DNA of 10,582 bases from IMG/VR virus record IMGVR_UViG_3300033830_000020, positions 1-10,582 of that record, one strand, 5' to 3'. Below are positions 2,646 to 9,620 of the stretch, in pieces. The notes under the pieces were generated by a model, which was not told where the DNA came from, ran no database searches, and saw only the letters and a list, made by a program, of their open reading frames with translations. Both the position numbers and the translations under genes were made by a program. Positions within the stretch are counted from its first letter, which is position 1. Every line of letters starts with the position of its first letter.

Positions 2646-2672
2646 TTTTGCTCCCGAATTAAAAGTTTGAGA

Positions 2673-2692
2673 TATGACAAATAAAAATATTT
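2673..2692 (-). promoter_or_regulatory. TATA+TGTCAT promoter of the SSB operon
   Basis: TATGACAAATAAAAATATTT on the + strand, identical to 264-283; about 28 nt upstream of ATG 2645. Confidence 0.75.
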
Positions 2693-2714
2693 GAGAATTT
2701 AATAGCTTAATATA

Positions 2715-2842
2715 TTCGGCACTGTGAGGTCAAACTCGAAACTTTTTAATTCGAAATTAAGGCCGAACGAGTGCAAATTCAAAATTGTAAGTTTGAAAGA
2801 TATAAAAATAGTTTCAAATTACAAATTTGAAATTAAGCACAT
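2715..2842 (-). ncRNA. Candidate structured non-coding RNA (or ssDNA structural element): two tandem related hairpins
   Basis: Inverted repeats TTCGGC 2715-20 / GCCGAA 2762-67 and GTGC 2771-74 / GCAC 2837-40 close two hairpins. Inner arms are duplicated (2731-43 ~ 2774-86; 2748-61 ~ 2824-37) with a compensatory G-C/A-T swap and G:U-compatible changes on the minus strand. TTTAAA at 2866-71 could be its TATA box. Confidence 0.45.
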
Positions 2843-2866
2843 AGGAAAAAAGAAATAAAAAAAGAT

Positions 2867-3139
2867 TTAAATTAACTTGAAGAATATAGATCTTATGATT
2901 TTTGAGATTTTGAGATTATATTTTTTTGCCAATTCTTCAAGTTTTTGATAGTATAGCTCATCAATTGTGAAAAAAACACGCTCATCATAGTTATCTGTAC
3001 TTTCTATTGGCTTAAATTCATCTTGATGGTTTAGAATTTTGTCAATTTCTTGTTTTATTAACTCTCTTTTTTCGTAAAAAAGAGATTTGTATCTTGAAGG
3101 AATTCTTAATTCGATATATTTGTTCTTTTGGCGCTTCAT
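2867..3139 (-). CDS. Ribbon-helix-helix DNA-binding protein with an extra N-terminal strand-helix unit (possibly AvtR-like architecture)
   Basis: C-terminal RHH pattern RVFFTIDELYYQKLEELAKKYNLKISKIIRSIF; N-terminal YIELRIPSRYK strand-helix. Divergent from rep with a shared promoter element. Confidence 0.65.
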   Translation of the reverse strand: MKRQKNKYIELRIPSRYKSLFYEKRELIKQEIDKILNHQDEFKPIESTDNYDERVFFTIDELYYQKLEELAKKYNLKISKIIRSIFFKLI

Positions 3140-3210: not shown

Positions 3211-3555
3211 GTGATCTGTGAAAAAGTTTTCATTTATCATTTTCTTTATACTTACACGTATTTTGTTACTATTGCTACAAATTATCGCTATAACTCAACA
3301 ACAAAAATCTATAAAAAATTTCGGCAATATATCTATAATCATGATAAAAATTCTCATATATTTAGCGTAAAAGAGTATACAACTAAAATGCATGGACTTC
3401 ATTATCATGTTTTAGTTTTTACGAATAAAAGACTTAACTATTCCAGAGTTCATAAACGAATGCCAAAACATAGTGATATTAGAATAGAATTAGTTCCAAA
3501 AACAAAAAAAGATATAAAAAAAGTTTTAACTTATATGTTAAAAAATCAAAAATAA
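3211..3555 (+). CDS. rep: HUH-superfamily rolling-circle-type replication initiator, SIRV1 ORF119 / SIRV2 gp16-like
   Basis: Motif 1 FVTIAT, motif 2 GLHYHVL (HUH), motif 3 YMLK (catalytic Tyr). GTG start about 18 nt after the TGTCA motif; exact start uncertain. Confidence 0.92.
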   Translation: MICEKVFIYHFLYTYTYFVTIATNYRYNSTTKIYKKFRQYIYNHDKNSHIFSVKEYTTKMHGLHYHVLVFTNKRLNYSRVHKRMPKHSDIRIELVPKTKKDIKKVLTYMLKNQK

Positions 3556-6171: not shown

Positions 6172-6192
6172 TTTTTTTATTTTTTCTATTTT
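6172..6192 (+). terminator. Oligo-T archaeal terminator after the capsid gene
   Basis: Consecutive T runs shortly after the stop codon, between convergent genes. Confidence 0.5.
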
Positions 6193-6227
6193 AGGATTTA
6201 AAATTTTAAAAAAATTACTTTTAACTT

Positions 6228-9047: not shown

Positions 9048-9071
9048 AGTTTGTCTGTTTATGCGTAAAAA

Positions 9072-9092
9072 GTGATGAACAAAGTTCATCAC
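9072..9092. repeat. Perfect 9-bp inverted repeat GTGATGAAC-AAA-GTTCATCAC
   Basis: Directly visible; lies just upstream of the BRE at 9099. Confidence 0.75.
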
Positions 9093-9098
9093 AGCATG

Positions 9099-9501: not shown

Positions 9502-9578
9502 ATTTATTCTTTCTTTATTTTTTTATCTCTAATTTTTTTCATCTTTGTAATAATATTTCTAGTTTTTGATATAAATGA

Positions 9579-9620
9579 AGCGAAAGATTTTTATATTTCG
9601 ATTCCTAATATTATATTGGG
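9579..9620 (+). promoter_or_regulatory. Strong BRE-TATA promoter, duplicated class, copy 2
   Basis: AGCGAAAGATTTTTATATTTCGATT...TGGG; homologous to 9099-9140. Confidence 0.75.

Follow-up and report, generated by a model that had tools for sequence, protein, structure and literature searches.

A twin-hairpin element between two genes of a usarudivirus is probably one copy of a dispersed repeat family

Introduction

Among archaeal viruses, rudiviruses are the most thoroughly studied model of replication and of the arms race with CRISPR. A 10.6-kb rudivirus fragment, IMG/VR contig UViG_3300033830_000020 (the whole stretch of 10,582 nucleotides is hereafter called the window, and positions refer to it), contains two adjacent hairpins in the gap between the genes of a ribbon-helix-helix (RHH) protein and a single-strand-binding protein (SSB). 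What is such a structure doing between two genes of a replication cluster? The original prediction, made from the letters of the window, placed the hairpins at 2715–2842, assigned their fold to the minus strand, and regarded them as an element within the cluster that could be, among other things, an RNA or an internal origin for Rep and SSB. The comparison with related viruses described here points to a different answer. The segment 2718–2840 is probably one copy of an undescribed, non-autonomous, interspersed family of two-hairpin repeats of the Yellowstone-type rudiviruses (Usarudivirus), and the family has probably spread by recombination at the motif GTGAGG.

The twin hairpin is an insertion in the RHH–SSB spacer

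Sequence similarity places the window in the genus Usarudivirus, and most of its length is approximately 82% identical to Sulfolobus islandicus rod-shaped viruses 4–11 (SIRV4–11) and to the Yellowstone isolates V3, V60, and V65. The RHH–SSB spacer is 221 nt long in the window, compared with 100 nt in SIRV4–11, V3, and V60. The metagenomic relative L063, which is 84% identical, has a clean empty site (L063:185/193), the left flank of which is identical to the window up to 2717, and the sequence of which resumes at approximately 2841–2846. The site is also empty in SIRV7, SIRV8, SIRV11, and V3. Because the spacer is short in the relatives and the empty site of L063 is clean, window positions 2718–2840 are an insertion, the right edge of which carries an uncertainty of approximately 2–5 nt. 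Alignment with the syntenic region of the relatives showed that the element is absent there; the twin hairpin was not found in the same spacer of any sequenced relative, so the insertion at this site is seen in the window alone and is not a conserved feature of the replication cluster.

The whole inserted copy is delimited by the empty sites and by a covariance model, which scores it at 134.7 bits (E = 4e-22), and it lies on the plus strand in the family-consensus orientation (GTGAGG ... AAGCAC). At its left edge, the insert carries the extra bases GGCACT (2718–2723, plus strand), which are missing from the empty site. These bases resemble the tail of a preceding unit (..GCAC plus one nucleotide), as in a head-to-tail junction, and can be compared with the AAGCAC-NNN-GTGARG tandem junctions of L078 and L053.

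The two adjacent hairpins are present in the gap at the predicted position, and the GC content of the element is slightly raised (0.31, compared with 0.22–0.27 around it). The right hairpin (hairpin A, 2771–2840) and the repeated ...GAATTAAG module are real and are conserved in relatives. The minus-strand RNA fold is confirmed (-33 kcal/mol, z = -5.18, with none of 200 shuffles as good), but its specificity for the minus strand does not hold, since the plus strand folds equally well (-35 kcal/mol, z = -4.94, 0/200). Folds calculated with DNA parameters have energies of -20.0 kcal/mol for the plus strand (z = -4.99) and -16.5 kcal/mol for the minus strand (z = -3.63). The structure of the window copy is real and non-random, and it is a property of a DNA palindrome rather than of one strand.

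Several details of the original prediction are revised by the comparison. The outer stem of the left hairpin (hairpin B), in which TTCGGC (2715–2720) was paired with GCCGAA (2762–2767), is peculiar to the window copy: TTC (2715–2717) is native flank, and GGC represents the first three bases of the insert. The left stem that covaries in the family is formed by 2728–2731 (GGTC) and 2761–2764 (GGCC). The ACTCG motif is located at 2734–2738, one base away from where it had been placed. The sequence TTTAAA (2866–2871), which the prediction noted about 24 nt upstream of the element, shares bases with the RHH stop codon and is kept in relatives that have no element here; it is therefore not the element's own promoter. 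The proposed search of Rfam, run as a permissive scan of the whole window, gave no match overlapping 2700–2860 at E values up to 10.

Copies of the element are dispersed among usarudiviruses

BLAST searches with the element alone identified homologous stretches that are 76–86% identical and located at other coordinates of other usarudiviruses, on either strand. Family copies are approximately 70–86% identical and occupy other gene boundaries. An nhmmer profile built from four copies and a covariance model identified two to four copies in each of nine usarudivirus genomes. A conserved-block pattern retrieved 50 metagenome contigs, which with three IMG/VR contigs make 53 loci; 44 of these loci hold true copies, about 70 in all and up to five each; nearly all copy-bearing contigs align to usarudivirus genomes. 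The genomes and hot-spring metagenomes contain at least 69 copies in at least 24 site clusters, in both orientations. Presence and absence differ between close relatives, and at nine sites the element has been gained or lost as a whole, giving filled and empty alleles. The window's site is a singleton among the 24 site clusters. The most similar copies at different sites, that of the window and one of V3, are 86% identical. Such repeats are not mentioned in the published descriptions of these genomes or in the literature that was searched.

In the collections that were searched, the family was found almost exclusively in usarudiviruses and usarudivirus-like contigs. A search with the covariance model, which was derived from 44 copies, gave no match in SIRV2, ARV2, or SMRV1, and BLAST against the phage collection gave above-chance matches to usarudiviruses exclusively. 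BLAST found no copy in plasmids, those of Sulfolobus included. An exact-pattern scan of one genome per bacterial or archaeal species gave 14 matches, none of them in Sulfolobales and 12 of them without any profile match. Two weak nhmmer matches, L038 from Parachlamydiaceae (E = 2e-4) and L046 from Vagococcus (E = 7e-4), are short and partial, contain the search pattern, and were taken as chance. An origin of the family from a host miniature inverted-repeat transposable element (MITE) was considered and set aside, as no cellular or plasmid copy was found in this test, which was limited to one pattern and one genome per species.

Contigs that best match the terminal variable parts of SIRV genomes, within approximately 0.2–3 kb of an end, hold many copies, as many as five each (L051, L053, L068, L078, L085, L071, L077, and L095). 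The distribution suggests that copies are enriched in the regions of highest gene turnover. In V3 (L023:24715–24897), and at the same place in V60 and V65, the element is accompanied by an extra open reading frame (ORF) that encodes a cysteine-rich protein of 60 aa and is missing from SIRV7, SIRV8, and SIRV9. The repeat copies therefore lie at the borders of variable gene cassettes. L061 seems to carry the cysteine-rich ORF without the element, with a flank match to the 3' part of the ORF alone. In relatives up to 92% identical to the window, a short-form copy is located just after the T-rich tract downstream of the major capsid protein gene (L093:2813–2915 and L098:1020–1127); the corresponding position of the window (6190–6197) is empty.

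The same spacer is empty in all relatives, and copies occupy at least 24 unrelated sites in both orientations, which is at odds with a locus-specific RNA gene or an internal origin of the Rep/SSB cluster. Annotating the hairpin pair as an origin of the replication cluster, or as an RNA gene dedicated to that cluster, would thus be misleading. The hairpins could also act as a signal in single-stranded DNA, on displaced strands, where they would mark entry points for priming or be nicked or loaded by Rep, SSB, and the ATPase, as at an internal origin. Strand displacement by rudiviruses yields long single strands (PMC5062984), the window copy folds well under DNA parameters, and Rep, SSB, ATPase, and a Cas4-like nuclease are encoded nearby. 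Nevertheless, we consider such a signal improbable, since the number and position of copies vary freely among close relatives, the single copy of the window occupies a site empty in all of them, and SIRV2, ARV2, and SMRV1 share the replication genes and have no copies. Furthermore, the orientation of the copies tracks local genes and not genome halves; a search for a relation between orientation and genome half showed no pattern. Between the element and the terminal repeats of V3 and V60, nothing is shared beyond A/T words of low complexity.

Structure of the repeat unit

The repeat unit has a length of 105–130 nt. The counts of covariation, reading frames, and strand preference given below are based on an alignment, A3, of 44 distinct near-full copies. 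The conserved 5' motif GTGAGG (2724–2729, plus strand) is Shine-Dalgarno-like and contains a TGA that is invariant in all 44 copies (A3 columns 11–13); at operon junctions, this TGA is the stop codon of the upstream gene. The left hairpin, or module B (2728–2764, plus strand), is composed of a stem of 2728–2731 with 2761–2764, which has the family sequence GGNC/GNCC (A3 columns 14–17 with 47–50), and an inner stem of 2736–2740 with 2750–2754, which is variable in sequence and register in the family. Helix 1 is 97% paired, and its third pair occurs as CG in 16 copies, UA in 15, and AU in 6; helix 2 is 86% paired. At the foot of the left stem, G.A/A.G juxtapositions between 2726–2727 and 2765–2766 (A3 G12.A52 and A13.G51) are present in 42 of the 44 copies. 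They resemble the core of a kink-turn, but no conserved canonical helix was found on their other side, and this identification was set aside.

The two hairpins are bridged by the most conserved block of the family in A3, which in the window has the sequence GAAATTAAG-GCCGAAC-GAG-TGC (2754–2774, plus strand); its consensus, AATTAAG-NCCGAAC-NAG, is nearly invariant. The right hairpin, or module A (2771–2840, plus strand), is long, closed by GTGC/GCAC, and formed by stems of 2771–2774 with 2837–2840, 2778–2783 with 2826–2831, 2786–2790 with 2819–2823, and 2792–2797 with 2813–2818, which lead to an A-rich apical loop (2798–2812). Helices 3 and 4 are 95% and 83% paired, with compensatory types GC28/CG11/AU2, GC26/AU14, and AU17/GC15. 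The unit ends with AAGCAC, so that the terminal inverted repeat (TIR) comprises only the 3 bp of GTG...CAC.

Some units consist of the left module alone or the right module alone, and others form head-to-tail tandems with a 3-nt linker; tandem or nested arrangements are found in L087, L078, L053, and SIRV9/10. In SIRV9 (L026:23594–23641), and at the same place in SIRV10, a 48-nt inverted left module is nested within the left module of a full element; the family is therefore modular and able to insert into itself. Exact 12-nt deletions recur at the tip of each hairpin in many copies (A3 columns 29–40 and 81–92, corresponding to window positions 2743–2754 and 2795–2806). They fit the 12-bp insertions and deletions that are a hallmark of rudiviruses and are also found in lipothrixviruses (PMC4390879).

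Part of the A-rich loop of the right hairpin (2798–2810, ..GAAAG-ATATAAAAAT..) resembles an archaeal BRE/TATA promoter. Judging by this resemblance only, a promoter active here on the plus strand would give an RNA antisense to the RHH gene.

A 44-codon open frame with a GTG start spans 2724–2858 on the plus strand and is probably not a gene. The element as a tiny mobile gene, encoding a protein of approximately 27–66 aa that starts after a GTGAGG ribosome-binding site, would account for the unusual openness of plus frame 0, which has 0.84 stops per copy, whereas the remaining plus frames have 2.7–5.3; 20 of the 44 copies have this frame intact. In about half of the copies an ATG or TTG follows 6–7 nt past TGAGG, and the 48-nt insert of SIRV9/10 is in frame. 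The other 24 copies, however, contain in-frame stops, codon 16 has all four first bases, including TAG in approximately 10 copies, and the covarying positions are non-synonymous sites. Furthermore, neither ATG nor TTG stands at the expected position in the window copy, and its 44-aa peptide has no homologue sharing words among 5.8 billion predicted proteins. A mobile protein gene is therefore a very improbable explanation of the family, and a protein product of the element frame is unlikely in general, but possible for some copies.

The junction block is matched by a host CRISPR spacer. CRISPR arrays with at least nine repeats of approximately 25 nt, ending ...GGAATTGAAAG in the transcribed sense, are present on non-viral contigs with a GC content of 0.40 (L050:2300–2900 and L075:60–160). 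A 37-nt spacer in these arrays matches the block in the plus-strand sense of the element, with 35 of 37 positions identical to the L051/L088 type. Together with the covariation-supported fold and the high conservation of the block, this spacer could be reconciled with a multi-copy gene of a trans-acting small RNA with a decoy, guide-like, or anti-defence role. We nonetheless give little credence to such a gene, as neither a conserved promoter nor a conserved terminator accompanies the element, whose flanks are different at each site, Rfam contains no match, and many copies are truncated to one hairpin. Mimicry of a CRISPR repeat was also rejected: for the one Sulfolobales repeat type compared, without gaps, the element agrees with the 25-nt repeat of L050 at no more than 16 of 25 positions, and shuffled sequences reach up to 18/25.

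Covariation supports the fold at the family level

A structure of 29 base pairs is supported by the 44 copies, in which 87.3% of the pair cells are paired, compared with 77.6% in column shuffles (0/500 shuffles reach the observed value). Double-change cells number 143 against 45.6 expected, and 18 of the 29 pairs have a compensatory change. When the partners are slid by 1–3 columns, pairing drops to 20–47%. For the plus strand, RNAalifold gives a structure of 15 pairs, and compensatory double changes are present in 10 of these. Thus, the original prediction that selection acts on a single-stranded fold with a duplicated motif is supported at the level of the family. Because the fold is kept by compensatory substitutions, the folded single strand, whether DNA or RNA, matters either for spreading or for tolerance or usefulness at the landing site.

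The assignment of the fold to the minus strand is not supported by the 44 copies, in which the plus strand is mildly favoured. The RNAalifold scores of -4.42 for the plus and -0.04 for the minus strand seemed to allow a strong claim, which was abandoned when the gap shrank with the full 29-pair structure (87.3% compared with 85.4% paired). G.T juxtapositions outnumber A.C ones by 91 to 67 (p = 0.067), and the plus strand is more stable in 31 of the 44 copies (Wilcoxon p = 0.0012). The strand preference seems to be weakly for plus.

Within orthologous sites, 47 pairwise double compensations were counted, compared with at most 9 in slid controls. The same comparisons contain 155 pair-breaking differences, and the paired columns are no more conserved than the unpaired ones. 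It therefore seems that resident copies preserve the fold to a certain extent, which keeps alive the reading of the element as a cis-acting RNA, discussed below.

Covariation also bears on whether the repeats are double-stranded operators for the adjacent RHH protein or another viral regulator. The repeated GAATTAAG, the TTCAAA/TTTGAA half-sites, and the RHH gene next door would suit operators, but the arms change in a manner that preserves complementarity and not sequence, unlike what a sequence-reading dimer would need. Relatives with the same RHH gene have a spacer without the element, and copies are found at gene 3' ends or between cistrons as often as near promoters. Of all the explanations considered, operators are the one that we find hardest to credit.

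Gene junctions and the proposed spread of the element

Where both neighbouring genes are known, 15 copies are in sense to both and seven, including that of the window, are antisense to both; these copies are not independent sites. At no fewer than four independent operon junctions, the upstream gene stops in the TGA of the element, and the next start codon lies 10–14 nt past the element, behind GGTGA. Empty alleles of operon junctions already carry TGGTGAGG, and filled alleles have it on both sides. In 16 of the 44 copies, GTGA is found at most 7 nt past the 3' end, and L087b and L076a are accompanied by 9–10-nt direct repeats CAGTGAGGC. No fixed target-site duplication (TSD) is constant over the nine junction pairs, and GTGA(GG) is duplicated solely at Shine-Dalgarno-type sites. 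No transposase is linked to the element: the ten proteins of the window include no TnpA according to Pfam and PHROG, and none is found in the annotations of the other genomes.

Over the time in which these genomes diverge, copies appear at gene boundaries and are lost from them. We propose that they spread by recombination or by copy-choice (template switching) between the GTGAGG of the element and similar Shine-Dalgarno motifs, during a mode of replication that would expose much single-stranded DNA. Occasional illegitimate insertion could place copies at other sites, such as that of the window. A recombination setting is plausible because of the abundance of single-stranded DNA and the annealing, nuclease, and resolvase functions that, as known for the virus family, we take to be encoded by the genome. 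Strand displacement, the main mode of rudivirus replication, produces abundant, long single-stranded DNA (PMC5062984). The window copy, which is antisense to its neighbours, is most likely a passenger rather than a functional component of the replication cluster. Transposition proper, by an enzyme of some kind, could also be at work in the family.

The virus might also mobilise or use the element directly as folded single-stranded DNA, which an HUH-like Rep would cut and join, making the family the equivalent in archaeal viruses of REP/RAYT or IS200/IS605 elements, or which would provide priming signals on displaced strands. This is a possibility to which we give a minor share of our confidence. 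If it were true, the family would be without a described precedent among archaeal viruses as a structured mobile repeat system and would drive the gene shuffling in their variable regions.

The junctions have a second possible explanation, to which we give somewhat more weight, though well short of that given to a dispersed repeat. The element could be a cis-acting RNA module of viral mRNAs, the plus-sense hairpins of which stabilise or process the upstream message, as those of bacterial REP/BIME do, with copies kept for tuning the expression of their neighbours. To the gene that follows, it would also supply a site for ribosome binding and, in the loop of hairpin A, perhaps a promoter of the BRE/TATA type. 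The recurrence of one exact architecture, with the stop in TGA and the following start, at four or more independent sites argues for this module, as do the compensation inside orthologous sites and the greater stability of the plus strand in 31 of 44 copies. At two pairs, U.G and U.A replace each other freely (23/21 and 17/23), as is common in RNA. However, seven copies are antisense to both known neighbours, the genes themselves are retained in relatives whose sites are empty, the two strands differ little (87.3% compared with 85.4% paired; G.T 91 against A.C 67, p = 0.067), and the promoter reading is a resemblance only.

We consider a dispersed repeat spread by recombination at GTGAGG to be the best account of the family, and the following observations weigh against it. 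Approximately two thirds of the copies with known context are co-oriented with the flanking genes, often exactly from a stop codon to the next start, which would be in keeping with an mRNA function. At four sites that are not of the Shine-Dalgarno type (window, L051, L078a, and SIRV11a), the empty allele has no GTGAGG, and the motif arrives with the element together with 0–9 nt of filler, which in the window is GGCACT; therefore, microhomology cannot account for every insertion. There are no near-identical copies at different sites, the maximum being 86%, so that no recent movement is documented, and gain is not always separable from loss. The family is old and keeps its fold, with compensations within orthologous sites, which is at least as compatible with a function at the site of residence as with mere selfishness. 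Finally, hosts were checked with one exact pattern in one genome per species.

Genes and flanking sequences around the insertion

The minus strand of the window encodes a Cas4-like nuclease (292–906), an ATPase (911–2218), the SSB (2244–2645), which is a PHA01746 protein homologous to the SIRV2 gp17 single-strand-binding protein, and the 90-aa RHH protein (2867–3139). The rudiviral Rep (PF21578/PF23343) is encoded on the plus strand (3211–3555) and was identified by the Pfam and PHROG scans of the ten window proteins. SIRV2 has a gap of 495 nt between the Rep gene ORF119c and the SSB gene ORF131b (L100:9373–9867), with no RHH gene annotated there; therefore, the 90-aa RHH gene characterises the gene order of usarudiviruses.

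The T-rich tract at 2843–2866 (minus strand) is native flank located directly 3' of the RHH stop codon and is kept in relatives without the element. It is a putative archaeal-type terminator of the RHH gene, given that archaeal transcription generally terminates at oligo-T tracts. The native spacer upstream of the SSB gene (2646–2717, minus strand) contains columns that are invariant also in relatives without the element. The conserved A/T block at approximately 2673–2695 may be the SSB promoter, and the insertion is positioned upstream of it. The insert would thus be placed between the RHH terminator and the SSB promoter, disturbing neither, and the window copy is apparently innocuous.

Elsewhere in the window, weak matches to C/D-box snoRNA models at 835–912, 9060–9097, and 9547–9591 (E = 2–3, far under the gathering scores) are probably chance matches in A/T-rich sequence.

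Implications for rudivirus genomes

A structured repeat that comes and goes at gene boundaries is previously undescribed for these viruses. Its fold may be used for single-strand spreading, for an effect on mRNA, or as a replication signal. Should the family be mobile, it would provide a means of studying how linear rudivirus genomes take up, discard, and rearrange genes; should the fold act at the RNA level, the element would be a portable expression module. Because the junction block is nearly invariant and present in multiple copies, the element is a natural broad-range CRISPR target, and hosts carry a spacer against the block.

Comparison with known repeat systems

The palindrome-associated elements derived from IS200/IS605 and the attC sites of integrons share with the usarudivirus repeat the absence of inverted terminal repeats and target duplication and the conservation of structure over sequence; they act as folded single strands, as the repeat may do. 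The repeat likewise has hairpins near both ends, no TIR beyond 3 bp, and no TSD. However, it has no conserved target tetra- or pentanucleotide 5' of its left end, as A3 columns 1–9 and the 5' flanks are unconserved, and it has no TnpA. An IS608-like target rule was rejected, since TTTACGAG is common to two of the empty sites and missing from the other flanks. Unlike in integrons, there is no integrase among the window proteins, and the ends of the repeat differ from the R''/R' cores of attC, as compared by eye.

MITEs, including SM1–SM4 of Sulfolobus, are small, non-coding, multi-copy, and polymorphic for insertion. The usarudivirus repeat is similarly short (105–130 nt) and non-coding, with a frame that is not conserved, and has many copies with filled and empty alleles at nine sites. 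It differs from MITEs in its TIR of only 3 bp, the lack of a regular target-site duplication and of a parent insertion sequence, and the lack of observed cellular copies; no autonomous parent element was found in the viral, cellular, or plasmid collections.

The pneumococcal BOX elements are also intergenic, form stable hairpins, and are built of modular units, which can be likened to the left, right, joint, and nested extra modules of the viral repeat. They have another sequence and host, and their boxA, boxB, and boxC reside in a bacterial chromosome. The Rickettsia palindromic elements (RPE) are 100–150 nt long and palindromic, have no recognisable transposase, tend to have one frame open, and touch gene ends, as the viral repeat does. 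RPEs, however, are typically located in frame within bacterial genes, whereas the viral copies are intergenic and their frame is broken in more than half of the cases. The genes upstream of the viral copies often end in the TGA of the element, and the frame is open in 20 of 44 copies, and no copy was seen in the middle of a conserved gene.

REP/BIME sequences are short, imperfect, extragenic palindromes without long terminal repeats that are dispersed, clustered, inverted, or in tandem, and are often located in operons between a stop codon and the next gene. The viral copies are likewise intergenic in all the cases examined, and both dispersed and clustered. REPs are single hairpins of 20–40 nt from cellular chromosomes and are linked to RAYT proteins, which are IS200-like TnpA enzymes, whereas the viral repeat has two hairpins in approximately 120 nt and no RAYT, the sole HUH-like enzyme at hand being the viral Rep. 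REP/BIME, RPE, BOX, and MITE are the nearest analogues of the usarudivirus family, which appears to differ from each of them in properties by which that system is defined.

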